Positions 1-49,381 of a DNA stretch of 64,000 nucleotides are shown here, piece by piece. The stretch's first letter is position 1. Every line of letters begins with the position of its first letter. Source of the stretch: Entomortierella parvispora E1425 (lineage: Eukaryota > Fungi > Mortierellomycota); assembly GCA_020891255.1 (NCBI GenBank), contig BQFW01000013.1:1550001-1614000 (forward strand). Reading direction: 5' to 3'. A program made the position numbers and the translations under genes. The notes beneath the pieces were generated by a model. The model searched no databases and had not been told where the DNA came from. It was given only the letters and a program-made list of their open reading frames with translations.

Positions 1-1649
1 GTTCAAAGGATTCATTCTCATTGTTTGCACTTATTCGGGACCTTTTTGCCCCTCGACGAATCTCACTTTGGGTGTTGAACTCTTGGTCACTCCCCGAATC
101 TGCAAGGCTGCTGTCTTGTTCGAATGTGAAAAAGTCTGAAAATCTGCTCTCTGAATCTGGATCTCTGTCTTTTGCCATGTCCAGCCCTTCTGCCGCCTCT
201 GTCAGGACTCTTCCCTGACACAAAGAGGCAGAAGTGTCGTGTGTGTGGGTCAGTGACTTAGCTTCGGACGCGTGTCGCCTTTTAAAGGACTTGTTCAACA
301 GTCGGTAGGCCACGGTCTCAAAGGCATGGAGGAGCAGTGTCCGGACATCATTCCTTGGTACGCAGGGGTACTGCATTCGCATGCGCTAGTGTGAATGCCA
401 GAGACAAAAAAAAATAATTCAAAAAAAAATGAGGTTGGGTTGACGCGTCATGAACGCGCATGTCGCGAACCTTGATTTTTTTTTTCTGGGTTCCGTCCCC
501 GGGTCTTCACCTTGATACTCTGATGCATTTTTCGTTGAACCACAGCGTGGGTAGATCTTTCATAGATCTGACAAATGGAGTCTGCCAATATTTCGTTGTG
601 CCTTGTAATATGAAGGAAGCGATCCACGTCCTTGGGTGAAAACACAAGCGGGTGCTCTCTGGCCAAAGCCCTCATGATTTGCTTGAATGCAATGGACATT
701 GCTTCAAATTCCAAGCAATCTGGCCCTAATCGTTCCAAGGGCGAGCGTGAGCCATTTTGACCACAGTCCATTTTGCGTGTTGACCAACAAATATCAAGGG
801 TGATCCACCGGAGTTCAGTGCGTGCTTGGTGTTGCCCCACCGGAGGAAGCGCATTGGACTGGAAACGAATCCAAGCGCCTGTGTGTGTGACAAAGAGTAC
901 TTGCGATTAATGCTTTGGCGCTGTTGACTTGCTCCCATTTGTTCTGTACCTTGTTCCCCAGGCTGACTTGATAGCTCGAATCTCGATATACCGTACTCTT
1001 CCCAACTCGATTGCATCCCAGTTGCACTGTCTTGCTGGGGACAGCAATATAAAAAAGATCAGAAGATGCTCGGCGACGGTCTGTTCAAAAATAAGGTACA
1101 TTTTTTCATCGAATTGTTATCACCTTGGGTTCGAGAAGGGACGAAAGGACGAGTTCATTGGAGTCAAAGTCAATGGTTTCGACATCATCCACGAAGTGCT
1201 TCCATTCGAGCCAGAGACAGCCACCGTTGACCCTGCAAGGAAGGGGAGGTCCCACCCAGAGCGCTTTCTGCATAGGTTGAGTCTCAGTTTCTACAACTTG
1301 GTGGCAACGGATCTTGAGGCTGGCAAGAGCTAAGCAGGGTGTAGCTGTCAGAGCATGATAATGACGGCAAAGACTGAAAGAGACTCTCAAGGTGCGATCA
1401 ATTTTGTCGCGGCCAACCTGGAAGCACAGACTTTGGCGAGGAGAGGGATGTGGAGGAGTCAGGGGTGCCCTGTCCTTGACCTTGACATTGATTCTGACCA
1501 GACCCGCAGGTGGATGCATCGGACACACGTTCCTGACCAGGGAGATTAGCGACGGTGACGAGGCTGCTTTCGAGGAGACGCATAGCGACGGTCGGAGTGA
1601 TGCTCCCTCGAGGTTGGCCATGGCTCTCACGGCGTGTCCTGGTGGTCAT
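1..1649 (-). CDS. Hypothetical multi-exon protein, runs off the left edge of the window
   Basis: Short minus-strand ORFs join in frame through GT-AG introns (…SLLEPK|QDSATG…PGEQG|AWIRFQ…MHQSIK|RMRMQYP…|GRVLTEAAEG…). The last exon is open to position 1. The start (ATG 1649, MTTRTRR) is tentative and no family is recognised. Confidence 0.55.
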
Positions 1650-2285
1650 GGAGGCAAATCTTGTTCTTGTGTCCTTGTGGAAGGGAAGTACAGGGCGCAG
1701 CGAGGGGCGGGCGAAGGTCGAAGGGACAAAGGACGAGCAGAAGCGGCGGAAGGAAAAGAGTTTCGCAGTTTCGCTTTCTTTCTTTTGTCCGTATGTCCGT
1801 ATGTCTGGCGGTGCAATGCCAGTGGAATGCATTCATGCTCAGAGCTGAAAGCTGAATGAATGCAAAAGGGTAAAAGGGTCAAGGTCAATAGGCAAAGGGA
1901 AGGAAGGCAGGTGCATTGCTCCTTTTATTTTTCTCTTTTCTTTTTCGCTCCTTCTTTCCTTGTCACCATCCATTCACCCTTTCACCCTTTCACTCTTTCA
2001 TTCTTTCATTCTTTCATTCGTTCACGCTTGCACGCCTTCCTTTGCTCCATTGCGCCCCATTCGCATCTGCCACCTGCCATTGCCCTGGCCCCATTCGTGT
2101 CCTCTCCTCTCCTCTCCTTTCCGTTCGTTTCCTTCTCTCCTCTTGCTGCTCTCACCCTGTGTTCCTGTGCACAACCACCCTCTTGCTCATCACGCACTCC
2201 CGCTTAATCTGCCGTATCACAGAGAAGAGTGAATAACTCGTTCAGTTCACGACCCTCTTCTGCTCTAATCTCATCCTTCTCTTCT

Positions 2286-4795
2286 ATGGGTATCCCCGTC
2301 GCAAGAGACCTCCAGGCTGAGCTGAATGCCAAGGTCAAGGCCCTCTTCGACAAGGTGGCCGAGGCCATCAACAAGGACCATGTAGGTTGCCTGCCTGTCA
2401 CGTTCATTTTCTCCCTTTCTTCCTTCCTCCCTGCCTCTTTCTTCTCTCTTTGTTCTCTATGTGCTGTGCACTTGCACTTTGCTTTGGATTTAGTCCGTTG
2501 GCAAAGCAAAGTGTCATATGGGAATCATCTCTATTGTCTGACCCTCTTGTTTCCTTCCCCCTTCTCTTTCATTTTCTCTTTTTTCTTTTCATTTTCCCTC
2601 GCTCGTGCTGTGTATGTGCGCAACAACAACGATAATAACCAACCGAACCCCTTTCTATTTTGTCCCAACAGCCATCCCATCAAGACTTTGACTTTGAGAG
2701 CTTTGTCGAGGGCTTTGACGAGGATAGCCCCCTGACTCAAGAGGTCTTTGAATACCTTGTCAAAGACTCGGCTCTGCGGTACTGGGATGCCAACCCGCTC
2801 ACGCGGCCGAACCCACCCTATCCTCATCGACACACTATTCACCACACTCCCCCTGCTTCTCCTTCTTGGGCAAGATTACGCGCAACTATCTCCGGTTCCG
2901 CAGTCGTCCCTGAGAACAATGGGGACGCCACAGGTGCCAACAATCAGAGCGTGCGCATGCGACAAGGACTCTATGGAATCGATCCTCGGAGCAGCGACCG
3001 CACTAGCGGCGATCGGCCCTTGAACAGCCTTCCTTTGACTAGATCCATAGGACCGCAGCACTGGCTGACTGCAACTACGCGCTCTGGCAGGAATCCTTGG
3101 AACGACACGGTTTCTGACGAAAATGAAGACGGCGATTCTGAGGTGGAAGAGCCTATGCGCCCAAGTTCTATCCATGCCAGTCTTTCATTCAATGAACGGT
3201 TGAATAGCTCTATCTTTAACGAGTCGGACGATGATCTCGATCAAGACGCGACAATGACTGGCGGTTCAACTTCAGGTGCAAGTTACAGAGACTCCCTCCC
3301 ATTGCCTCCTCGTACCTCCACGTTTGGAGTAGACAGTCAGACGCGACAAAGGTCAACTCTTACATCGCTGTCGCCGCCCATCGATGGGTGGTTTGATGGT
3401 GGTAGTCGTGCATCTCGGACGTCCAGCTATTCTTTTTCCCAGATCGAGACCTTTCGGAGGGCGACCGAATCTCTGCAGAGGGACATTCGATCTTTGCGAT
3501 CCCAGGTTGCAGCCACGCAAGCATCATTTGCGGCACAGCGGAGCAGCTCTCGGCACAACCCAGATGAGCGTCGGATGGCTCTGGAGCAGCATCTACAGAG
3601 GCTTCAGCTACTTGAGAGACACCACACACGGAGCGCTGTAAACTTGATGGAGGCTCAGGTTCAAAACGTTCGAAGGCAACAGGAGCAACAGCGGCAGCAG
3701 CAACAACAAGTTCAAAATGAGCTTCGAGAACGGATTACACAACATCAAGCTCGAGCACAATCTACCGTCAGTGCACCACCCACATCATCATTGCCCCTAT
3801 CATTGTCAGAAACAGTGTCCATCTTCACTTCTCAGCCTCGCAGTACGATATCGCCACCTCCATTACCCACCGCACCCTCGATGCTTCCATATCGCCCAAG
3901 AGCCACATCCAATACATTACCATCGCCGTCATCCGCACGCTCCTCGTCTCCTGGATCCTCCTTCGCTTTAGGTGGACTTTTCCAGGCACAATCATCCAGG
4001 ACGCCTACCGCGACAATTGTCTCCAATTCTCACCCTCCAGACGGATCAGTGTCAAGGACACAGAGATCAAGACCGCCCTTGACACCCTCCTTCTCATCCT
4101 CGTCCTCTTTCTCGACTTTATCGTTGTCGTCTTCCTCGCCGTTCACGTCAGGCTCAAACTCAAGGTCGTTGTTGACTCGCACCGGGTCTTCCAGTTCTCG
4201 TGATTCAGAGCTTAGCTCCGGTACGGAAAGCGCCACCAACTCTAGGCATGATCTCCAGGCATCGCCTGCGATTCCATCCACACGTGATATTCTGACGGCG
4301 GCAATAACAGATATCGAAGCAGGGGCAGCTTCCGATGATTCATCGTTCATGACCTCGTCAACAGTGATGGGAACTGAAAGTACTCGGCCAGATCCCGAGA
4401 GCTACCGCCGACCTAGCGCTGAGGACTATGAGCTATTTACGGCTCTATCGCTGCGTAGACGACAGCGACTACGAGAGGTTGTGGAGGCAGCAGAGGGTCT
4501 TCGAACATCAGTCGAGAGGCGACGCATCGTGCTGGAGGATCTTGATCACGGAGATGGAGAGCCAGTGGTTGAACTCTTGCTGTCAGATGATGGTCAGTCA
4601 GACCCTGTGGGTGTGGCGCAAGTCTCTATTCCTTCTTCTGTCCCTCTGACGCCGGGTCCATTATCATCAACATTGGAGGTGGCCAGCTCTAGCTCAGAGA
4701 GGGCAGAAGCAGAGGCAATAGCCATGCTGACCCCCGTGTCGACGTCGAGGTCGACTGAATCCCCAGAGCCAACAGATCAAGCGGCTCCCCTGTAG
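2286..4795 (+). CDS. Hypothetical Ser/Thr-rich, largely disordered protein (~740 aa)
   Basis: Short exon 1 (MGIPVARDLQ…NKDH, donor gtaggt) splices at the cccaacag acceptor (~2671) in phase 0 into the 711-aa ORF 2660-4795. A Q-rich coiled-coil segment lies in the middle. Confidence 0.75.
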
Positions 4796-30617: not shown

Positions 30618-31019
30618 TTACATCTCCTGGGAAGCGGCACCACCCTTCTTGGTCTTCTTGGGCAAGAGAGAGTCGTGGATGTTGGGGAGGACACCACCCT
30701 GGGCGATGGTGACATGTCCGAGCAACTTGTTCAACTCCTCATCGTTACGGATGGCCAACTGCAAGTGGCGGGGAATGATACGAGACTTCTTGTTATCGCG
30801 AGCGGCGTTACCAGCCAACTCGAGAATCTCAGCGGCCAAGTACTCGAGGACGGCAGCGAGGTAGACGGGGGCACCAGCACCGACACGCTGGGCATAGTTA
30901 CCCTTGCGCAAGTGACGGTGGATACGACCGACGGGGAACTGAAGACCGGCCTTGGAAGAGCGGGAGGTCGAGTTCTTGGAAGCCGAAGCAGACTTGCCAC
31001 CGGATTTGCCGCCAGACAT
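30618..31019 (-). CDS. HTA1: Histone H2A (intronless, C-terminal SQEM phosphorylation motif)
   Basis: 133-aa sequence [17 protein letters not shown]…[10 protein letters not shown]…ASQEM. Confidence 0.99.
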
Positions 31020-32918: not shown

Positions 32919-35900
32919 ATGACCAAGAAGTCGGGTCCTTCTGGAGACGAGATGGACGTCCCGGACAAGGACGAGTCTCGCACTTTTACGCTACCGCTAC
33001 TGTCGGATTCCTTGGAATGGACACAGTCCATTACCGAGGAGTCAATCACGTCCTTCACCACCACATCTAAGCCTGCGCATGGATGGCCAGAATCCCGTCG
33101 TGGTTGGAGTCGCTCTAGAGAGAGGAACATGGACAGAGATGGGGATAGATACAGAGACAGGTATAGGGACAGGAGTAGGGACAGGGGCAGAGACAGGGGC
33201 AGGGACAGGAGCAGGGACAGGGAAAGCTATTACAACGGTGGTGGTAGTGGTGGTGGTGGTGGTGGTAGCAACTACAGACACCACTACAGGCACAGAAGCA
33301 CCAGCAGCAGCGGCAGTAATCGCAGCCAGAGGAGCTATCGGATCCCTGATCACCAAAGAAGCATCAGTGGTACCTCGGCCCCTGCAGCGATCCACGCCTA
33401 TCCGTCTCGTCACCCCACTGTAGGTTCTACTTGAAGAAAAGGAGATGTTGAAGGAGGAGGACACACGATACTAAGGCTTTTGTTACCCTTTTTTTTTTTT
33501 GTTTCAGCAGCACAGCAGCAGCAGGTCGATAGATATGACCCACCCAAGACCAGTGGCGGCGATTCCGCCAGTGCATGGACGTACCCGCGTCTCGGAGCCA
33601 AGAGATCAAGATCCAACAGCATTACCGCCGCCACCACCTCCCCCTCCTCCACCTCCACCACCACCGCCTCCACGACCACCAGTGTTACCAGTCCTGCCGA
33701 TACTGCCTGTACCGTCAACACAATCAGCAAAACCAGGACCGCTAGTATTACCAGGACAGCCACCAGTGTTGCCAGGACAGCCGCCAGTGTTGCCAGGACA
33801 ACCACCAGTGTTGCCAGGACAACCACCAGTGTTGCCAGGACAACCTCCAGTACTGCCAGGACAGCCGCCAGTGTTGCCTGGACAACCAGCAGTGCCGCCA
33901 GGACAACCAGCAGTGCCGCCAGCACAACCGCTTGTATTGCCAGGACAGCCGCCAGTGTTGCCAGGACAGCCGCCAGTGTTGCCTGGACAACCACCAGTAT
34001 TGCCAGGACAGCTGCCAGTGTTGCCAAAACAGTCGCCAGTGTTACCAAGACAGTCTCCAGTATTGCCAGAACAGTCTCCAGTATTGCCAGAGCAGTCTCC
34101 AGTATTGCAAGAACAGTCTCCAGTATTGCAAGAACAGTCTCCAGTATTGCCAGAGCAGTCGCCAGTGTTGCCCGAACAACCACCAGTATTACCATCCCCA
34201 CCAGCTCCATCCCAACCAGTTCCACCAGCCCCACCAGTATTACCGGAACCACCCAAGTCACCAGTGCTATCGACGTCGCTAGGACCACAGGGACTGACTC
34301 TGCCCACAATGGATGACGAGAGCGAATACACACTGGTCTACCCGACACACGCTTGGGGCCAAGGTAATTATACACGGAAACAAATTCCAGCCTCCAAGCG
34401 ATTGATTACCTCGATTATGGAAAGGCAGATCCAGAGTTCAGATGAGGATATGAGCGATCCCATGTCTCCACCACGAAAGAGTCAAAGGACCTCAACTCGT
34501 GATGTGGATTATTCGCTTCGCAAAATGAGTTCGGCGTCGTTGATCCGCAAGGACTCGGGCGGAAAATCCAGCCGAACCACTGAGCAGGTAATGCACCTTT
34601 ACTACTCTTGTTGCTTGAAACAGAGCAGACAAAAAGATATTTTCTTATTAACATTATACCCGTTTTTATTCACATAGTCCCCAATCCGTCGGGTGAGATC
34701 TCATAAGAGACAGCCTTCATCGGTATCGACAGGTTCCATGGATAGCGGTAAACTGAACGAGACTCCCTCTCGAGCCACCAGTTCGGATCGCTCAGCCAGC
34801 GAAACAACGCTTATTCCCGTCACTATCGCCTCTGTCAGCACTTCAAGCACAGCTACCCTGTCCTCCAATACTGCCGTCGTCAATACGACCTCCCACTCCA
34901 GCAACAATACCCGTTCCATCAATGACAATGACTCAATGGACAGCACAGACTTTATTGACATTATGGAAACTTCGAACAGTGCGGATTTCATTGACATTAT
35001 GGAGACGTCGGATATTATGGAAACTTCCGACGTTATGGATACTACGGACAACACTTCAATGGCTATCGTACCAGAGACAACCCGTGCCGGTCCAAAGAAG
35101 AGACCGGCTGGACCGGTGGAACGCCTCGACTATGTGCTGATCCCGGTGATGAGAAAACCTGCCCCCAAATCTGCAGCGGAAAGCTCTAGGCCAAGTACTC
35201 CAATTATGATTGAACCTGAGGACGTCAAGATGGAAGACGATGTTCGGATAGCAGATGTTCCTATGGAGGATGCTTCTTCATTTGACAAGACCCGCACCCA
35301 AGAGAAGGGGAAGACCCCTGTTCGAGATGTGTTGATTGTCGAAGATGAGGTGACTCTTATTGAGCAGGAGGATGAGCCATCTATTCATCAGGAGGACGAA
35401 ATTCAGCAGCTGGATGAAGTCCCCAGGGACGACACCTCCGTGCAGCAGGAAGACCAGGTCCCGATTCAACAGAAAGACGACCCCATTCTGCAGGAAGACG
35501 AAATTCTTATTCAGCAGGAAATCGAAATACCCACTCAGCAGGAAGACGGAACTCTTCGAGAGAAAGATAGGACGCCAGTTCAGGAAAAGCAGAAGACCCC
35601 TATCCAAGAAGAGGAACCCTCTGTTCAGCGGAACAAAAATACACGCGCTCAACAGAAAGTCAAGACACCTGTCCCAGAGAATCCAAGGACTTCTACTCGA
35701 CTGAACACCCGCAGTCAGCAGAAAAACAAGACTCCTGTACAAGAGAAAGAGAAGACCCCTGAGATTGAGGTTGTGGAGAAGCGAAGAACCCGCTCAGCAA
35801 ATAACACGGGATCTGCCTCTGCTTTGAAGTCGGGCCCTCAACCCAAGGATGTGCAAGACAAGTCAAGGGCGGTTCAAAAGAAGTCTCCACCTACCAAGCC

Positions 35901-38707
35901 TGCACCAAATCCCAAGACTCCTTCAGCGACCACGCCTGTTGCAGCAGGCAAGAAGAATGCCAAGGTCATTCGCGACTGGTGGCTCCAATACATCGCTGCG
36001 AACACGAACACCGAGGACGAATTCATGATCAGCGTCCATGGGCATATGACGGAACCAAGGCCTATGGTAATGTGATTTGAAGTTGGAGGATGATATTTTG
36101 TCGAGTCGCATTTTATTTTCCTGGAGTGGGCAACTAACATTGTACTTCTACCTGTTATTGACTCTATTTGTAGGTGTGGCACACATCTTGCATCGAGGAA
36201 TCTCCGAGGCCATTGCTGGTGGTAACTCGTACTGGGTCGCGCTATGCTCTCCAAGGAAAGCTGGACCAAGAAAAGATGATTGCTAATGGTAAGTGCCGTG
36301 ACTGAACGTCTATTTTGTCTGCTATTTCAAAGCCATTCAGTGGATTCATGTACTCATCAGAAGTTTTTTTTTATATGGTCAAATAGGATTCGGGATGGAC
36401 ATCATCGATGCATTTTCGAATGGATTTCCCAGAGACTGGAAAGAGTTGCTTGCCCGTGTTTTCCATGGCAGCCACGATGATGCTGAAGATATAATAGATA
36501 TAGAGACGGAGTCAGTAGAACCTGCTGCAGCTACTCAAGACATGGAGGGGGTTGAACAGGAGACTACAGCCGCAGCAACTGTCGAGACACCGCCTGCTGC
36601 CAATACTCGTCGCAGTAGGCGAAGGACAGCGAGTAAGGATCCACTGCCCGTAGCCCCCACCAAGCCTGCGAAACCTGCCAAAGCCGTTAAACCCGCCAAG
36701 CCCGTCATTGTTGAGCGCATGGTTGCCGTGGAGATCCCAGTCTATCGATCCCCAAAGTCAGCACCAGCTCAGGCAGGTCCGTCTCGTCGCACTTCTGCTC
36801 GTATTTCGGTCGATCTGACAACGCCTGTGCGTGAGCTCAGGTCATCTCAAGCAGCAGCAGCAACAGAAGTGGAATCAATAACTCTTGACGTGGCGGACGA
36901 AGCTGGTGAAGCGGGTGAAGCTGATGCAGGAGAACCAGGACAGCAGGATGATATCGATATGGCTGAAGTCGACCAAAGTGACTCTGTAATGTCCAGGATC
37001 CTTGTTGAATCAACTCCAGTCCCCGAAGAGACGGCTCCTACCAATACAGAGACGACCCCCATCCCTATGGAGACGACACCTACTCCCATGGAAATGACCC
37101 TGGTCCCTGAGTTTGCCACGGCCCTTTCAGAGACTACCCCGGTTCCTGAAGAGACTACCCCGGCTCCTGAAGAGACCACTCCGGCTCCTGAAGAGACCAC
37201 TCCAGCTCCTGAAGAGACCACTCCGACTCCTGAAGAGACGATTCCAGTTCCCGTAGAGACGACTCCAGTTCCTTTAGAGACAACTCCGGCTCTTGTGGAA
37301 ACGACTCAATCTCCCGTAGAGACCACCTTGGGCCCTGTAGAGATTATCCCCGTTCCCGCAGAGGCAACCCCGGATGAACTAGAAACGGCTGGTACTTTTG
37401 CCGAGGCAGAGCCGGCTGTGATCGAGCCCGAGGATGAGCCAGTAACATCTGACAATGCAGAGAACGTGGATAACAATCAAGGACTGTCCAGAGGCGATAA
37501 CGGCGGAACTGAAGAAGTGGAATTGCTGAAGGATCAAAAAACTCGCGTGAACTCTAACTCTGTGCCACTTTCAGCAGAGAACATCGAGGAATTACTCTTT
37601 GGAATTGACACCGTGATGGATGAAGGCGAACCTCTCGAGGAGGATCAGATGGAAGACGCAAACTCCATGGAGGAATTCTTCAAAGAGTCGAGCAATATCG
37701 GAACGGAGGAACCCTCGATAGAGCCATTGGTCGAGCCACAAGAAGACCGTCGTCATAGCAGCCTGTTCAAATCGCTCTCCTCCATTTCAGCCTCCTCGCA
37801 AACGATGATTCCTTCTGCAATGGATGGTCTTGAAGGACCTACTGAGAGCGAAATGTTTGACGCGTCATTCTCGCAGGAACACACCATGATGTCAGCCCAT
37901 GATATGACAGAGCTGGGACCAGGGATCGAATCGACCATCGAAAAGATCTCTCTTGGTATCTTTGGCACAGACTTTAACAGCAACTTTCGAAACGACACCA
38001 GCATTCACGGCTCCATCAGCGACTCAATGCGGGACTACTACCATGAGTCGGAGACCGAGCCCCATGACCTTCGGTCTTTGATGGGTCTGGATGATGAGCA
38101 GGCGCTGGGTGATCTCTCGGAGCATGCATTGGCAGCCTCTGTCAATGGCATCGACTTGAATCAACTCCAGCCTTTAGATGAGCTTGCAGGGAGTGAAGGG
38201 TATACTATGGACCACACCACCTCGATGGCAGATCAGATCTTGCAAATGTCTACCAGTCGGGATGCAGATGCAGATATCAACGCGATGCTTGTGTCGGATA
38301 TGTCGGGGGACGCGGACCCTGCAAATGTCCTCATCACGGAGTCTGACAGCAACGAAGCGACAGATCACACCGTCAAGGGTACCGAATTAACCGACACAGA
38401 CACAATGGAGAGTGTCGTTCGAGACGCGACTGATTTACAGAGCCAGTCACCGGGAAGGGCTTCCAAACGAAGGAGTCTCAGTCATCCTGTTGATGATGAT
38501 GAACTCAACGGTGGGTCAACTTCTCAACGGAGCGAAAGATCGAATGATGGATCAAGTGACAGGAGGAAGCGGCGACCCTTGAGCTCGACCCCTGACCCCA
38601 CCATCGAACGAATGGCTTTCCCTCCCGTGCTGGTGTACACCCCATCCAGGACAATACGAGTACAGGACATTCGTTCCCGAGACCGCGCCAACAAAAGAGC
38701 ACATTGA
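32919..38707 (+). CDS. SANTA-domain protein, KNL2/M18BP1-like, ~1800 aa, otherwise repetitive and disordered
   Basis: Five phase-consistent exons: 32919-33419, 33508-34587, 34678-36066, 36174-36288, 36387-38707. Exons 3-5 splice to IRDWWLQY…ISVHGHMTEPRPMVWHTSCIEESPRPLLVVTRTGSRYALQGKLDQEKMIANGFGMDIIDAFSNGFPRDWKELL, which matches the SANTA pattern (DW…V.G…W.(S/T)S.I…T..G..Y.L.G.LD…GF…F..GFP..W). Confidence 0.82.
33742..34182 (+). repeat. Coding minisatellite, 21 units of 21 bp (PVLPGQP grading to PVLPEQS)
   Basis: Counted directly; consensus ccagtgttgccaggacaacca. Confidence 0.95.
37024..37390 (+). repeat. Coding 21-bp repeat encoding E-E-T-T-P-A-P-like heptads
   Basis: gaagagaccactccggctcct-like units, degenerate towards both ends. 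Confidence 0.85.
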
Positions 38708-39212: not shown

Positions 39213-40455
<1,243 letters not shown>

Positions 40456-41277: not shown

Positions 41278-43500
41278 ATGTCAATCATGTCAGAAGGCGT
41301 TGGTGGCCCTATTCCAAACATGGGCTCGATGGCCCTGCCACCGTCATCATCCACAACAACAACCTCTGTCCAGATTGGGCCCACACCTCCCTTGACAGAA
41401 GCGCAGCGGACGGCCCTGGAGGGACATATGCATCGGGACTCTGTTTTTCTCGCGGCCTTTGAACAACAAAGGCAACGACAGAGTGCGCTGCTGATGGAGA
41501 AACAGCGCGAGCTTCAACATGCGGCTCAGACAAGGGTGGCATCGTACGGTCCAGGCTACAACCCCTCGTTTGGCAATGGATCAGGGCAACTGTCAGCCCA
41601 TGGATTCCATCCCCCAGGAAGTCATCCCCACATCATTTACCCCTCGCAACGGAAGCGGTCCCGCAAGTCAAAAGAGTTTTCATTGTAAGCATGACCTTTT
41701 TTTTGTGTTTTTTTGGGAGGCGAAATATCATGTTGACATAACTGTCTGCATTTGACCTGAAGAACTAACACTCGTTTTAATTTACCGGGATATCTTGGGA
41801 ACTCAACAGTCGAAAGGCATCACTGGAGGAGCAGGCACAAAAGGAGGATGTTCTCGTACCGATTCGTCTTGAGATTGAAGTGGACGGTCTGATTCTTCGT
41901 GATACCTTTACTTGGAACCTGCATGGTAAAAAAAAAGCCTCCCAGGACCTTTTTTTTTGCGTTGTTCGTCGCTCTTCAGGCTTTGGCTGTGTTACTGACT
42001 GGTGCAAAACACCAAGCTACTCGAACTCACCGTACGACTTTTTTTTTTTTTTTTTTTTTACTATTTTCAAGAATCCTTGATTACGCCTGAACACTTTGCG
42101 GAAGTGATGTGCGAGGACATGCAGTTTTCACCACAACAGTTTGCACCCCTCATCTCCAAATCGATCCGGGAACAGATTCAGGACTACCACCTTCCAGTGA
42201 TTGCCACCCCAAACCCACCTCTAGCCGAGGGAGAACCTGGATCTGCCGTTGTGGAGGAGAAACCAACACAAGAACTACGAATTTTAATCAAGGTAAAAAA
42301 AAAGCAGCAGCAGCAGAGCAGAGAAAAGGCAAAAAACAGAGGAGGTTGGAGTGACTACGGACATTCAGAAAAGCCCCTGATCAAAGACACTGACTTGGCT
42401 CCTGCCCTTGTTGTAGATCGATATTACTGTCGCTAATACCTCACTTGTGGACCAATTCGAATGGGATATCTCATGTCCTAATAATGACCCCGAGCACTTT
42501 TCAGAGGTGCTCGCTAACGAACTTGGACTCGGCGGAGAATTCCGGTAAGGAGATATGAAAAAGATGAGCAAACCCTCGGAGGACGCGGAGGCTGTATACG
42601 CTTTGAAGCAAAAGAAAGAAAAAGAAATGTCACTCACCAAGACCACCTTTTGATTGCCACACGTCTCTTTAGCACTGCAATTGCACATTCGATCCGAGAA
42701 CAAGTACAGATTCACACGAAATGTCTCAACTTGATCGGCTACAACTATGATGGCAGTTCGGTCCATGACGAGGATCTCCGCACCAGCTTCCTTCCCAAAA
42801 TCACCACCATCCTCCGAGAAGAAGAATCTGTGGAGCAATTTACACCGATCCTTGAGAAGCTTACTGAACCCGAAATCGATAAACTGGAGCGGGACCGTGA
42901 ACGAGACAAGAGGTAAGCAATGGTTATATGGAGTATTTTATCTATCATGGAATGAGCCCCATATGAACGAAAAAAGACTAAACATTTCTATCTGATGGTG
43001 ACCTGAATAGACGAAAGAGGAGACAAACCCGTGGTCGTAGAGGCGTTATTTTGCCTGATAGAGAACCTTCCAAGACCAAGCGGACGTTATTACACCATGG
43101 ATATATGCCCGAGCCCTCAGATTCAATGTTGGATCCTCAGAGCGATATGGCAGCTCATAACCGGGCAGGACCCACGACGAGGAGGACAGCAACGATGGCT
43201 CAGGATCATTCACCACTCGGGGCCAATATCTCTGCGGCTGCAACTATGGCTGGCCAGGGCACACCGTCACATTACCGGCTAACACGGAAACTGAGGGGCA
43301 CAGGTTCGGATCTCTCGGCCCATCACTTGGGATTGCCAGGAGCGTCGAATCTGGGCGGTGGGGGAATGGCAGGAGGCTTTTCAAGAGAGTCGCTTCATGG
43401 ATCTAAAGAAAAGCTGATGGCGAACAGTCATCAAAACCACATGCATTCCCCCATGATGCGGGAAACAACACCGGTGTATAGCATCAAGGAAGGAGAATAA
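41278..43500 (+). CDS. SNF5: SWI/SNF subunit Snf5/SMARCB1
   Basis: Multi-exon gene with [82 protein letters not shown] and [21 protein letters not shown]. Confidence 0.92.
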
Positions 43501-44145: not shown

Positions 44146-46634
44146 ATGACGAGGCGTTCAAGACAAAATCAACGAGGTGGAGGAGCAGCTCAGGCACAAC
44201 CCACGCCCAATCCAGCGCCTGCTCCAGTTCAGAACAGTCCCCCAGCACCACCACCACCACCACCCCCAGCAGTTTCATCTCCCCCTCTCTCGACCACAGC
44301 CAGCCCCACGGGCAGTGTGCTCTTGCCCCCTGTCGAGATTGAGATCAGTCCCAGACATTCATTCCATTCCAGCTATTCCTCATCTTCTATCCAACAGGCT
44401 CGTTCTCGAGGAAGGCGGGCCAGCGCGACGACCAGCGACGAAGAAGAGGAGGAGGAGGACGAGTATGAGGACCCGATCAATGAACATCCGGTGGAAGAAG
44501 AGGTAGGAAGTCATCATCAACACTTTGACCGACATCACCATTATGACCGCCATCATGAATACCACCCGCAATCGTCCTCCCAACGCAAGAACCGGGGTCT
44601 GTGGTCAAAACAAAAAGTACATCTGTCCGAATCAGCGACAGGCGGCGATCCATCGCTGGACGACATCGAAACCTCTGTGCCTCGCTCGGGTCCGGTGGAA
44701 AGTGGTGTGGGTGGTGGCAGTGGCGGATTGAGGCGGTCGGTCAGCAAAGCAAGCATCACGGTCAAGTCGCGCAGTTGCTTCGGTCGCCTTCGACGATCGC
44801 CCAACTTTATCTTGTTCACGGTGTTTTTGGCTCTTTTTGTCGACATGGCCACGGTAAGCTCTTTTTTTTTTTTGGCTTTTTTTTTGGCTTTTTTTTTGTT
44901 GTTGTGTAGAATGATATTTGTTTCCCTTTCCTTCCTTCCTTCCTTCCTTCCTTCCGTCCTTCCTTCCTTCCTTCACTAAATGCCATTGCCTGCTCTTTCC
45001 TTCTTCGCCTACAGTATGGAATCATTGTGCCCATCATTCCCTTCATCGTCTCTGACAAGATCAGCGGTGGCGCAACCGACACTGGACTCTTGTTGGCAAT
45101 GTACGCCATCGGCATCTTGCTGTCCTCCCCTATCTTTGGGATCCTCGGCGACAGTTTTGTATCCCGTCGTGTCCCCATGTTGATTGGACTCGCAGGAATG
45201 TTGGTCTCCACAGTCTTGTTCATGGTCGCCACAAACTTTTACGTCTTTTTGGCCGCGAGACTGTTGCAGGGTGTGGCAGGGGGTTCAGTCTGGACATTGG
45301 GCCTGGCCTTGATCACCGATGTGTTTCCGGCCCATACGTTGGGGGTCCAGATGGGCAAGGCTTTGATAGGCTATACCCTCGGACTGATGATGGGACCTCC
45401 CTTGGGTGGCATCTTGTACGAGCGGGGTGGGTACCAGGCACCCTTCCTGTTTATCTGTGTGCTCACGTTGATTGATTTCGGATGCCGTGCCCTGATCATT
45501 GAGGAGCGGGAAGAGATTGTCAAGGCCTTGAAAGAGCAAGGCAAACAGGAAGAGGCCAATGAAGAACAAGCCGAGCTCGTGGCCATGCGCAAGAAGGAAC
45601 GTGAGCAGGACTCGACCAGCTTTTGGAAGCTGTTGCAGAACAAGCGTTTGCTGGCCTGTGTGGTCGTGACGGCCTGTAATGCCTTTGTGTTCTCGGGCGC
45701 TGAACCGACGGTGCCTTTGCATCTGGCGTCCACATTTGATTTCACCTCTGGCAAGATTGGGATGGTTTTTATGGCCTTTTCCTTGCCCACCCTCACAGCT
45801 CCTCTTTCAGGTAAAGAAAAAACTTTGTTGATCAGTGTTTTTCTAATTACTTTTGATTTTGATTGAATTTTTTTTTTTTTTTATCTTTTTATCCCTCCTC
45901 CTCCTTCTTGGATCTCTTCCGTAGGCGCCTTGTCGGATAGGTTTGGTGCCAAGATTGTGTGCCTGATTTCCCTCATCGTCTGTGCGACCTGCGCGGTGAT
46001 CCTTGGTTTTTTAGCACACTCACTGGCCATGATCATCTTCTTATTCACCCTGATCGGCATGACGGGCACCGCGATTTTGACCCCCGTCCTGGGAGAACTC
46101 TCGGCCGTCGTCCGCATCACCGGTCAAGGCGACGGTTTCGCACGGGCCTATGCCATCTTCAACATGGCCTTCTCGATCGGTGTCCTGGTGGGTCCTGTGA
46201 TCAGTGGCCTGGTCTTTGAGAACTTTGGTTTTGAAATCATGACCTTCACCATGGCGGGCGTCCTCCTCCTTGCCGTGCCTGTGGTCGTGCTCTGGATCGG
46301 CGATCTGGCGCAAAAGAAACGTGATTTGGCGAAATACAAAGAAGACGAGGACCGTCGTCGTATGGGCTGGCCTCGCTCGTCCTCTCGTTACAACCTTGAG
46401 TTTATGGAAACGACGGATGATGCGGAATTGGGTCGGAAAACAACGCGCCAACAGCGACAGGAGTTGTCGGGGGTGAGTCCTCCTAGCTTTGATGCTGTGG
46501 TCGTGGAAAAGAACTTGGAGGATGAATTGGCCCATGACTTGAGCAAGGATGTCGATGCCGAAGAACAAAAACGTGTACCTATGGGTGATATCCTCAAGTC
46601 GGCACGAATGGACGATCCAATCTCTTCATGTTAG
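44146..46634 (+). CDS. MFS transporter, SLC18/vesicular amine transporter-like
   Basis: Three exons. The N-terminus is Pro/His-rich and disordered, followed by hydrophobic helices with FGILGDSFVSRRVPML, ARLLQGVAGG and LSDRFGAK motifs. Confidence 0.88.
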
Positions 46635-46848
46635 GCATTCCACGGATCATAGAAAATTATTAAAAAAAAAATCAGCGTCAAATATCTTGGAGTTTCAAAT
46701 ATTTATTATTACATGTTGGCAAGAAAGGAGAATGACAAGCAAGCATCCCAACATGCTGATGATGATGATGGGAGGAGGGTGATGGAGATGCATGGAGGAA
46801 CAACAAAAAGGCGGAGTGAATCGAGACGGCGGAAACGGAAGGAGATTT

Positions 46849-48873
46849 TTAAAGCTGCTCCAAACGCTTCTGGATCTCGGAAATCATGTCAGCGCGGGAA
46901 TATTCGAGACCTCCCTTCTGGGACTCGTCCTTGGTGCGCATGTCCTTGATCTTGATCACTCCCTTCTCAATCTCCTCGCCTCCGACAATGACAGCCAAGG
47001 GAATCATGTCACGGTCGCAGACATCCCACTGGTTCTGAGTACGGGGCTTCAACTTGTAGGCAAACTCGGCCTTGATGCCAGCATCCCACAACTCTGTGCA
47101 AATCTTCATTCTCTCCTCCACAGACACACCTCCGAGTCCGACCACGTAGACCTGAACCTCGTTACTCTTGATCTCGTCCTTCTTTTGCTTCTGCATCAAG
47201 ATCGAGAACACACGCTCGACACCGATCGAGACACCGACACAGGGGATCACCAAGTTGGGGAGACCCTTCTTGTTTGTGCCAGAGAACATACCCACCAAGT
47301 TGTCGTAACGTCCTCCAGCAGCAACGGAACCGACACCGACAGTGCTCTCGTCCAATTCGTCCGTGCCCTTCTTGACAGTGGCTCTAGCCTTCTCGCCGTT
47401 AGCCAAGGCTACGCATAGAGAAAAATGGATCATTGGTTAGGGGACAGCGCGACCCAAAGAGTTTCTCGCAGTTCTTTCTGAGGCAAAGCTCATGCACTTA
47501 CTTGGGGGAGCAGATCCCTCGAGAACAGCTTCGTAGATCAATCCAGTGTAGTAATCCAAACCACGGGCCAACGACAAGTCAAAGGAAGTGTACTTGGTCA
47601 CGTTCAAGACGTTCAAGTACTTGAACAAGAGAGTCATATCATCCAAACCCTCCTTGGCGCGAGCGTTCGTGCTCAACTTGGCATCGCTATAGAGACGCTC
47701 CAACAACTCCTCACCTCCCTTGAGCTGAACGTACTCTCCAATCAAATCAGCCACAGCGGGGTCCAAGCCCTTCTCCACAGTCATCTCCTTGCGCACCTCG
47801 AGCCAAGGCAACTTGTCCAACTTGTCCACAGCCGACGAGATGGTGCGGATCTTGTCCTCGGGAACACCGCACACGGCGAAAATACCGTCCAGAATCTTGC
47901 GGTGGTTGATCTTGATCGTGAAATCGCCCAAGTCCAAAGCCGACAAGCACTCTGAGAGCACACGCAAAATCTCGGCATCAGGGATCATGGCATCATAGGT
48001 TCCAGCAATATCGAAATCCTAAAAGCAAAATCGATCCCGGGAGATGGAAAAAAACAAATGTTGGGGAATGGTTAGATGATGTGAGCAGAGTTGTCAAACC
48101 CCTCCGTCTTGTCTCCAGATCATGTCGTCCTTTGTCCTTACGCATTGGAAGAACTCTCTCATGCGACCCTTGGTCATGGCAGGCTGGTCACGACGGTAGA
48201 CCTTGGCAATGTGGTAACGCTTAATGTTCTGGTACTCCTTTCCGTTCATGGCCAAGAAACGGGCGAAAGGGACAGTCAGATCGTAACGAAGGGAGCACTT
48301 CTCGCCTCCTTGATCCTCGAGGTCGTAAATCAACTTGCTGTCCTCGCCATACTTTCCAGAGAGAATCTCCTTGAGCTCAAAGACTGGGGTATCGATGGTG
48401 ATGCCTCCGTGCTTCTTGAAAACTGAAATGATGGTCGAGAAGATCTTTTCCCTGACAGCCATCTCCTGGGGCGAGTAATCCTTGGTGCCCTGTTATTTTT
48501 GAAGCAAGAATAAACATAACGGACAAGGTGGTGGTGAGTCACGGCAAACAAGCAAAAAGCAAAGAAAAGGAAAAGCTCATGAGGCAAGGAAGAAAAGAAA
48601 TCAACAATGGGACAAAGAAGAAAAAGAATGTACCTTGGCGTTCTTGAGAGTAAAGACTCCCTTGCCCTTCTTTTCTTCTTCAGCCTTCTTCTTGGACTCC
48701 TTGGGCTTGACCTCAGGGACGATGCCGTCCTTGGGCAAAAGAGCATCGCGCTCGGCCTTGAGAGCATTCAAAGTGGCGACCTCAGTGGTGATCTGCTCCT
48801 TGGGGGCCTTCTCAGCCTTGAGTGAGCGGACGACGTCGGCCTGGGCGGTGATGCGTTGTTCAATGTCCTCCAT
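46849..48873 (-). CDS. HTS1: Histidyl-tRNA synthetase with N-terminal WHEP domain
   Basis: [15 protein letters not shown] (WHEP), LKNAK|[48 protein letters not shown] and GVERVFS. Confidence 0.96.
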
Positions 48874-49381
48874 GGTGGGTGGGTGATTAAGAGAAAGTGG
48901 GGAATGAAAGATTGAATGGATGAACGAATGCTGAGAGGTTGAAGGAGATTAAAAAAAGGAAACAAACGGCGAACGAAAATGTGACTGCCAATGTCCCTGC
49001 ATTTCGATGACTCTACGCTTTCTGGCCATGCGCGTCTTTTCTAGGCTAGGCTGCTCTCCCCAGAGTTGCATCAGCGGGGGCGCAGACCGAGCTTTCTTCT
49101 CTTTCCTAGAGATCAGAAACTCCACTAGCTGTATACTGGGCCATGGCTGTTATTATTGTAACCACTTTGCCTATCCTAATGACTGAACAAATGTCATTTT
49201 TTTATTCAAAGAAAAGAGTAATTGCGCACCACACACCGTCCAGCTGCAAGGCTGTGAACAGATGGCAAAACAGGACACCAGATAATAGAAATGTTCAAGC
49301 CGATCCGTCTCTGTGCCAATGACGTGGAAACTTCTTCAATTGAGTTTGTCGCAATTGATAATACTTGGAAAAGACGTTTTT

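Follow-up and report, generated by a model that had tools for sequence, protein, structure and literature searches.

Why should a gene of the centromere-licensing type lie inside a core histone cluster, and what would such a gene do in a fungus? The question is raised by the genome of Entomortierella parvispora E1425 (assembly GCA_020891255.1, contig BQFW01000013.1), of which we analysed positions 1,550,001 to 1,614,000 of the forward strand. This stretch of 64,000 nucleotides is called the window. Between a divergent H2A-H2B pair and a divergent H4-H3 pair it holds one long gene with a SANTA domain. SANTA defines the KNL2/M18BP1 family; in vertebrates, SANTA and the pre-SANTA segment contact CENP-C and CENP-H/K (PMC13501546; PMC9210943). 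Here we show that the predicted product of the gene is a Mortierellaceae ortholog of KNL2/M18BP1, the SANTA subunit of the Mis18 centromere-licensing complex, and that it has no SANT/Myb domain. Its linkage to histone genes is real, old and widespread in the Mortierellaceae. The reading that we favour, and hold to be probable as a whole, is that of a KNL2/M18BP1 ortholog with a role in CENP-A licensing, whose linkage to histones has been kept passively.

Is there really one gene here, and only one? An initial annotation of this DNA had named the SANTA gene as the sole gene between the histone pairs, and it was right: four long plus-strand open reading frames (ORFs) between H2B and H4 join into one frame of 5406 nucleotides, or 1801 codons, in a single five-exon model, and the public annotation calls no other gene there. 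In the public record of the locus (L003, GCA_020891255.1 BQFW01000013.1) one gene covers the same 5789 nucleotides (L003:11284-17072) and encodes an 1801-amino-acid product; the introns total 383 nucleotides in that annotation as in our splice model. The model aligns to P0022, a hypothetical protein of 1559 amino acids from Gryganskiella cystojenkinii, at E 3e-40 and with no gap at either splice junction. Three intron positions are common to the two genes (before SP(I/S)RR, directly after ...PRPM and directly after ...NG). Those within the SANTA domain, after ...PM and ...NG, are kept in all four spliced orthologs, from the window, Gryganskiella, Linnemannia hyalina and Mortierella sp. GBAus27b. 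The gene models of the last two come from homology-guided splicing (brute-force enumeration of intron sets gave too many solutions), and the one for L. hyalina reproduces the annotated length of 848 amino acids exactly. Sequencing runs matched the window only in patches, from a diverged strain about 87% identical (patches 85-90%), and contained no informative joints; these patches sit on coding parts and start exactly at the ATG at 32919, with differences mostly three bases apart. The predicted gene model is thus supported by comparative evidence, which is stronger than the diverged-strain patches.

The identity of the domain follows from its pieces. No single ORF reveals it because it crosses exons 3, 4 and 5 and is cut by two introns; the initial annotation, which had placed it at ~35965-36460, had seen this correctly, and we find it at 35962-36463. 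Pfam scans were made exon by exon, against a Pfam SANTA cut-off of 21 bits. Exon 4 alone (38 amino acids) matches PF09133 at 17.6 bits over profile positions 34-70, and the head of exon 5 (its first 34 amino acids) at 17.8 bits over positions 75-92. The two matches are colinear, and their simple sum lies above the cut-off. P0022 scores 57.6 bits on the same profile. The window domain is 49% identical to that of P0022 (E 4.8e-39), whose SANTA region in turn matches the SANTA domain of human M18BP1 across 100 residues (PDB 9r6h, E 5.6e-12). Language-model neighbours of the ortholog are Mis18-binding protein 1 (M18BP1) and SANTA clusters. Both the SANTA call and the assignment to KNL2/M18BP1, as first proposed, are upheld by these matches, the latter through the direct match of the ortholog's domain to the human protein.

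The earlier statement that no Myb/SANT domain is evident also agrees with our scans: there was no match in any window exon (Pfam, E<=10) nor in full-length P0022, and precomputed Pfam results for seven orthologous products list PF09133 alone. A C-terminal SANT/Myb domain is found in animal and nematode members; since plant members likewise lack it, its absence does not exclude membership in the KNL2/M18BP1 family. The predicted architecture is plant-like, with SANTA and short linear motifs in a long disordered protein.

Searches by similarity retrieved little else. Among the 130 matches of exon 5 in an exhaustive phmmer search there was one true ortholog, P0022. The other 129 were rejected as relatives; they were low-complexity pairings with the TTPxPEE repeat and included a retrotransposon (P0001). 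Word-indexed protein searches, one of them with a profile from the exon fragments of four species, returned P0022 only, and their blanks are uninformative on distribution because the index is swamped by low-complexity words. Metagenome scans with a protein pattern, and with a SANTA-core DNA pattern that recovered both known loci, found nothing. AlphaFold models on thin alignments reached predicted local distance difference test (pLDDT) values of 41 and 50, too poor for a fold search.

How far does the histone linkage extend? Relatives' loci were fetched by exact look-up of histone proteins, their called genes were checked, and a hidden Markov model (HMM) from four SANTA domains was scanned against all loci except nine fetched last. 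The order H2A(-) H2B(+) SANTA(+) H4(-), optionally followed by H3(+), occurs in at least seven Mortierellaceae taxa, so that other assemblies have the linkage too; its confinement to this one, which the initial annotation had named as a refutation, is thereby excluded. The block is present in G. cystojenkinii (L001), where the contig stops after H4; in L. hyalina (L012), GBAus27b (L010) and Mortierella sp. GBA30 (L034), with SANTA products of 848, 1142 and 1406 amino acids; and in four assemblies of M. alpina and close kin (L038, L041, L042, L043). In Dissophora globulifera (L021) the contig starts within the block, with H4 and H3 outside it, and an unannotated SANTA gene lies beside H2B. SANTA exons were confirmed by the four-domain HMM in all nine of these loci. 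Across nine annotated loci the stop of H2B and the ATG of the SANTA gene are 460-1095 nucleotides apart, and 267-797 nucleotides separate the SANTA stop from the H4 stop. The corresponding distances in the window are 872 nucleotides, with H2B and the SANTA gene both on the plus strand, and 505 nucleotides.

Two of the orthologs deserve separate description. That of Dissophora (L021:~1250-4000, minus strand, JAAAIO010000819.1) has the YPxxxWG motif, an exon-4 equivalent (IWHSS...) and a GFPAGWK tail, and no public gene call. In that of GBAus27b (L010:13255-13365, minus strand) the SANTA core reads LHSH where WH(T/S)S is otherwise invariant, and a single residue is missing ahead of the conserved Tyr; the product nonetheless has SANTA in its Pfam record.

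The histone genes that enclose the SANTA gene (Table 1) form a core cluster of the replication type, with divergent H2A-H2B and H3-H4 pairs, canonical histones and a Pfam match on four out of four. The H3 and H4 proteins are 100% identical to the relatives' copies. Outside the block the neighbours vary. On the H2A side lie ABC and F-box genes in the window, Rxt3-Aminotran_4 in Gryganskiella, Dissophora and L043, histidyl-tRNA synthetase (HisRS) and Pex24 in L. hyalina, GBA30, L038, L041 and L042, and FAD_binding_3 in GBAus27b. The neighbour on the H3 side is SNF5, except in L038, which instead has a Cofilin-Cornichon-RPL27A-H2B-H2A-Rxt3 cluster. Between the window and L. hyalina the segment MFS-SNF5-H3-H4-SANTA-H2B-H2A is inverted as a unit, HisRS lying on the H2A side in L. 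hyalina.

A second full histone cluster in the window's genome has no SANTA gene: it runs Rxt3-H2A-H2B-RPL27A-Cornichon-Cofilin-H3-H4, then Thioredoxin (L002/L011/L048, BQFW01000015.1), and the cluster type Rxt3-...-RPL27A-Cornichon-Cofilin-H3-H4 is common in Mortierellaceae. In one assembly of the M. alpina group (L038/L039, GCA_015847185.1 JAAAHX010000174.1) the two types are fused, as HisRS-H2A-H2B-SANTA-H4-H3-Cofilin-Cornichon-RPL27A-H2B-H2A-Rxt3. The swapped flanks and this fused cluster fit recombination between paralogous histone pairs. The H2B, H4 and H3 proteins of the second cluster are identical to those of the window. The window's genome also has a lone H3 gene, encoding an identical H3 protein, between RPE65 and CHS5 (L049, BQFW01000008.1), an arrangement also found in assembly GCA_001651415.1 (L052).

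Table 1. Positions in the window of the SANTA gene, its exons, introns and motifs, and its neighbours
Feature	Position	Strand	Evidence
Histone H2A, 133 amino acids, divergent from H2B	30618..31019	-	ORF; Pfam Histone_H2A_C 74.5 bits, Histone 59.9 bits
Histone H2B, 136 amino acids	31636..32046	+	ORF; Pfam Histone 85 bits
KNL2/M18BP1-like gene, five exons, 1801 amino acids	32919..38707	+	Splice model, public annotation, ortholog collinearity
Exons of the SANTA gene	32919-33419, 33508-34587, 34678-36066, 36174-36288, 36387-38707	+	Splice model
Introns of the SANTA gene, all GT-AG	33420-33507, 34588-34677, 36067-36173, 36289-36386	+	Splice model
N-terminal conserved motif FTLPLLSDSL	32985..33014	+	blastp against P0022 residues 24-49, 50% identity
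21-nucleotide tandem repeat, ~21.7 copies, PPVLPGQ heptads, after the poly-proline run, species-specific	33739..34194	+	Tandem Repeats Finder, translation
Pre-SANTA conserved motif [FY]xxLxYPxxxWG ... SKRLITSIME	34324..34422	+	Ortholog alignment, motif scan
Basic stretch PRKSQRTSTRDVDYS, weak candidate CENP-C-like motif, after YPxxxWG	34471..34515	+	Translations
First ER(M/L)xxVxIPV motif, 5' of SANTA	35116..35148	+	Motif scan
SANTA domain, amino acids 956-1054, broken by introns 36067-36173 and 36289-36386	35962..36463	+	Pfam PF09133 on exons 4 and 5; P0022 alignment
Second ERMxxVxIPV motif, 3' of SANTA	36710..36742	+	Alignment, motif scan
21-nucleotide tandem repeat coding (E)ETTPxPE units	37129..37326	+	Tandem Repeats Finder; source of nearly all spurious phmmer matches (query residues 200-350)
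C-terminal-half motifs SLFKSLSxISASSQ and LGIFGTDF	37760..37975	+	Alignment, motif scan
Basic C-terminal motif RTxRVxDIRSRxRANK	38648..38695	+	61% identity to P0022 C-terminus; weaker basic tails in other orthologs
Histone H4, 103 amino acids, convergent with SANTA gene	39213..39524	-	ORF; Pfam histone-fold match CENP-T_C 34.4 bits
Histone H3, 136 amino acids, divergent from H4	40045..40455	+	ORF; Pfam Histone 159 bits
SNF5-domain gene beside H3, syntenic in several relatives	41278..43497	+	PF04855 on L003; tblastn matches from SNF5 genes of L012, L010, L015
MFS transporter, past SNF5	44638-46448		
Histidyl-tRNA synthetase, after the MFS transporter	46783-48909		

Apart from SANTA, most of the 1801-amino-acid protein is low-complexity (P 12%, S 10.5%). 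About 60% of it is repeats or low complexity, including an RD/RS-like run, a poly-proline run, the PPVLPGQ heptads and the (E)ETTPxPE repeats. Short conserved motifs are scattered along it, and parts of the coding DNA are conserved in the diverged strain: 32919-32977 at the N-terminal end, 34367-34559 and 37733-38045. The YPxxxWG motif was found in six of the nine orthologous genes scanned. ER(M/L)xxVxIPV was found in four of the nine, with two copies each in the window and Gryganskiella genes and one each in L. hyalina and GBAus27b. SLFKSLSxISASSQ and LGIFGTDF are present in the window, Gryganskiella, GBAus27b and, partly, GBA30. The segments FTLPLLSDSL and YPxxxWG...SKRLITSIME are putative candidates for binding Mis18 (Yippee-like) proteins.

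Between genera the best parts of the SANTA protein reach 29-55% identity and the remainder cannot be aligned; among its neighbours the histones are 97-100% identical, the MFS transporter 67-81% and HisRS 86-93%. Centromere proteins typically change fast in sequence, and such rapid divergence beside conserved neighbours fits a protein of this kind.

What might the protein do? Our functional proposal takes its cue from the roles of SANTA and the pre-SANTA segment in vertebrates. SANTA and the conserved motifs beside it would attach the protein to CENP-C and CENP-H/K, which are constitutive at the centromere. Once docked, it would recruit Mis18 together with the CENP-A chaperone (Scm3/HJURP), so that new CENP-A is deposited. 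The gene itself belongs to an old five-gene block (H2A and H2B divergent, SANTA, H4 and H3 divergent) that persisted in much of the family while the outer flanks were reshuffled. With a divergent histone pair under tight constraint on either side, it would be kept there passively, as recombination between paralogous histone clusters would swap the flanks and not the interior.

Several observations weigh against this reading. The CENP-A-licensing role is a reasonable inference, from homology only. The CENP-C-like (CENPC-k) motif binds CENP-A nucleosomes and belongs to family members of non-mammalian vertebrates, plants and chytrids; here no convincing copy was found. The basic stretch that follows YPxxxWG, also given as RKSQRTSTRDVDYS in the window and matched by RRSRRIRVNDDEYM at the equivalent place in Gryganskiella, resembles the start of a CENP-C motif, yet it lacks the Pro and Trp that such a motif is said to require (PMC9210943); it is poorly conserved among four orthologs and has no Pfam or PDB-sequence support. 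An N-terminal Mis18-binding region of the animal type is not recognisable in the predicted protein. The precomputed Pfam table has no match for the annotated 1801-amino-acid product itself, whereas the orthologous products carry PF09133; surveys that rely on such domain tables would miss the gene. Nor is the linkage universal in the family. Mortierella sp. AD011 (L015) and AD094 (L018) have an ORF-free spacer between H2B and H4 instead of the SANTA gene, of 3.4 kb (L015:4524-7959) and 4.6 kb (L018:890-5512), with 42% GC and a longest stop-free stretch of 138 codons. No SANTA signal was found in these two spacers by tblastn, phmmer or HMM, and no gene is called in them. The HMM scan found no SANTA exon in ten Podila-type H2A-H2B loci, and none of the genes called in three H2A-H2B and three H3-H4 loci of Podila verticillata carries SANTA, the last-fetched loci being covered by annotation only. 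These spacers and the Podila loci indicate that the block can be lost.

The AD011 and AD094 spacers share several conserved patches at 70-95% identity; they may represent a decayed gene, regulatory or non-coding DNA, or the trace of a lost factor. In Rhizomucor pusillus (GCA_041956525.1; L006, L008), one of the Mucorales and so of a lineage without CENP-A, H2B-H2A and H3-H4 pairs lie 0.9-2.5 kb apart. At these two loci, the part of the genome covered here, nothing or one called gene of 77 amino acids stands between the pairs, and no SANTA gene.

Could the gene be an annotation artefact, or a decaying pseudogene made of chance ORFs in low-complexity DNA? The large share of repeats in the protein would suit such an origin. 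The frame, however, has no internal stop in 1801 codons, which join through four canonical GT-AG introns, its N-terminal, middle and C-terminal motifs are collinear with those of the ortholog, intron positions are conserved among orthologs, and the diverged strain retains coding patches with differences spaced mostly by threes. We regard this explanation as effectively refuted. A SANTA chromatin factor might also act away from centromeres, in histone gene regulation or general nucleosome assembly, with its position in the cluster reflecting that role. The gene does sit among what would be its targets, its product has neither SANT/Myb nor a clear CENP-C-like motif, and the family-specific motifs YPxxxWG and ERMxxVxIPV are without known counterpart. 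Against this, the SANTA proteins characterised so far (vertebrate M18BP1, nematode KNL-2, plant alpha and beta KNL2) all act, to our knowledge, in CENP-A/CENH3 loading (PMC9210943); the domain matches human M18BP1 directly; and the speed of sequence turnover is that of centromere proteins. We think a non-centromeric role very unlikely.

Does the gene's position itself serve a purpose? The initial annotation had described it as physically linked to, and perhaps co-regulated with, canonical histones. The linkage stands, in at least seven taxa; co-regulation is not borne out, as no promoter word beyond TATA is shared. In an 8-mer enrichment over 23 Mortierellaceae histone promoters only the TATA box (TATAAAAG-type) and A/T-rich words emerged, the TATAAAAG word being present in 12 of the 23 against 1.9% of controls, and the enriched words are not shared with five SANTA upstream regions. 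Another element, CGAATT(T/G), occurs twice in the window's H4-H3 promoter (39525-40044) and five times in the H3-H4 promoter of the second cluster (L002:15021-15556). It was rejected as a shared promoter element: CGAATT is enriched only in this genome's H3-H4 promoters, rare or absent in those of other Mortierellaceae, and absent upstream of the window's SANTA gene. With no motif shared with the SANTA upstream region, co-regulation is unsupported. Selection could still have favoured the position if the licensing factor has its chromatin domain or cell-cycle control in common with the replication-dependent histones, its supply being tied to S phase. Although at least four different outer flanks occur, each of the nine annotated SANTA loci has H2B upstream on the same strand and a convergent H4, the unannotated Dissophora gene likewise adjoins H2B, and the second cluster lacks the gene, which thus tracks one particular pair of pairs. 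The promoter comparisons speak against such selection, and so do the breakpoints: at least four rearrangements touch the block's outer margins and one or two took the gene out (AD011/AD094, Podila), a count that does not depart from the neutral picture. SNF5 and MFS are often syntenic as well. We therefore favour passive retention as most likely, selection for co-expression not being the main cause, and consider a selected position rather doubtful. A selected block, as a small set of chromatin-assembly genes, would couple production of the licensing factor to histone activation, and its break-up in Podila, AD011 and AD094 would mean changed CENP-A loading or loss of the factor; we find this chain of events distinctly unlikely.

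The Mortierellaceae gene adds a member to a known family, in a gene neighbourhood that is family-wide and newly seen. We know of no M18BP1 or KNL2 in the well-studied fungal models, budding and fission yeast, and so the Mis18-complex route to the centromere has been worked out in fungi only in a derived state. Fungi outside the Dikarya have kept the animal/plant-type subunit in at least one lineage other than the chytrids, and the Mortierellaceae ortholog offers a fungal system that has it. M. alpina, which is widely cultured and used industrially, carries an ortholog. The Mortierellaceae also stand close to the Mucorales, in which CENP-A was given up altogether; this kinship could allow the loss of the licensing pathway to be ordered stepwise across Mucoromycota. 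The conserved position in the histone cluster offers a new and inexpensive way to locate the gene where annotation is poor, as in Dissophora, where it is unannotated, and it sets up a testable case on the co-regulation of a centromere factor with bulk histones.

How does the gene compare with what has been described? In the literature searched we found nothing on a Mortierella SANTA protein or a histone-linked KNL2, and public records label these proteins hypothetical, with automatic PF09133 matches only. A fungal KNL2 is not unprecedented: a passage of PMC9210943 that cites Sandmann 2017 reports KNL2 with the CENPC-k motif in chytrid fungi. A survey of Mucoromycota kinetochores treats 26 proteins, and a search of its text for Mis18, KNL2 and M18BP1 gave no mention; the same text places the CENP-A and CENP-C losses within Mucoromycotina (10.1101/706580).

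The closest likeness is to plant KNL2. Arabidopsis alphaKNL2 and betaKNL2, like the fungal protein, have one SANTA domain and no SANT/Myb, the rest being disordered and fast-evolving with short motifs, and for both kinds a role ahead of the deposition of centromeric H3 is presumed (PMC9210943). Plant alphaKNL2 differs in its well-conserved C-terminal CENPC-k motif (KRSRSGRV/LLVSPLEFW), where the fungal protein has only the degenerate basic stretch N-terminal of SANTA, without Pro and Trp. At 848-1801 amino acids the fungal proteins exceed the plant ones two- to threefold in length, with SANTA mid-protein, and their genes are histone-linked; such linkage was not encountered for plant KNL2 in the literature searched. 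With vertebrate M18BP1 (human, chicken, Xenopus) the fungal protein shares a SANTA domain homologous in sequence, with a WH(S/T)x...T.SG..Y.L.G..D core and a GFPENWKE tail, and a conserved pre-SANTA segment. What the vertebrate proteins have in addition, a SANT/Myb domain at the C-terminus and a defined N-terminal region for binding Mis18alpha/beta, is not recognisable in the fungal one. In fission yeast the Mis18 complex (Mis16-Mis18-Mis19/Eic1-Mis20) is also a fungal CENP-A licensing machinery and recruits Scm3. In Schizosaccharomyces pombe, however, M18BP1 and SANTA proteins are missing and Mis18 is recruited in different ways (PMC7618776), whereas the Mortierellaceae carry a SANTA gene. 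The histone genes themselves resemble other fungal core-histone clusters, with canonical divergent pairs, shared promoters containing TATA and several clusters per genome. This one differs in holding a large non-histone chromatin gene between its pairs; in the other type in the same genomes that company is RPL27A, cornichon and cofilin.

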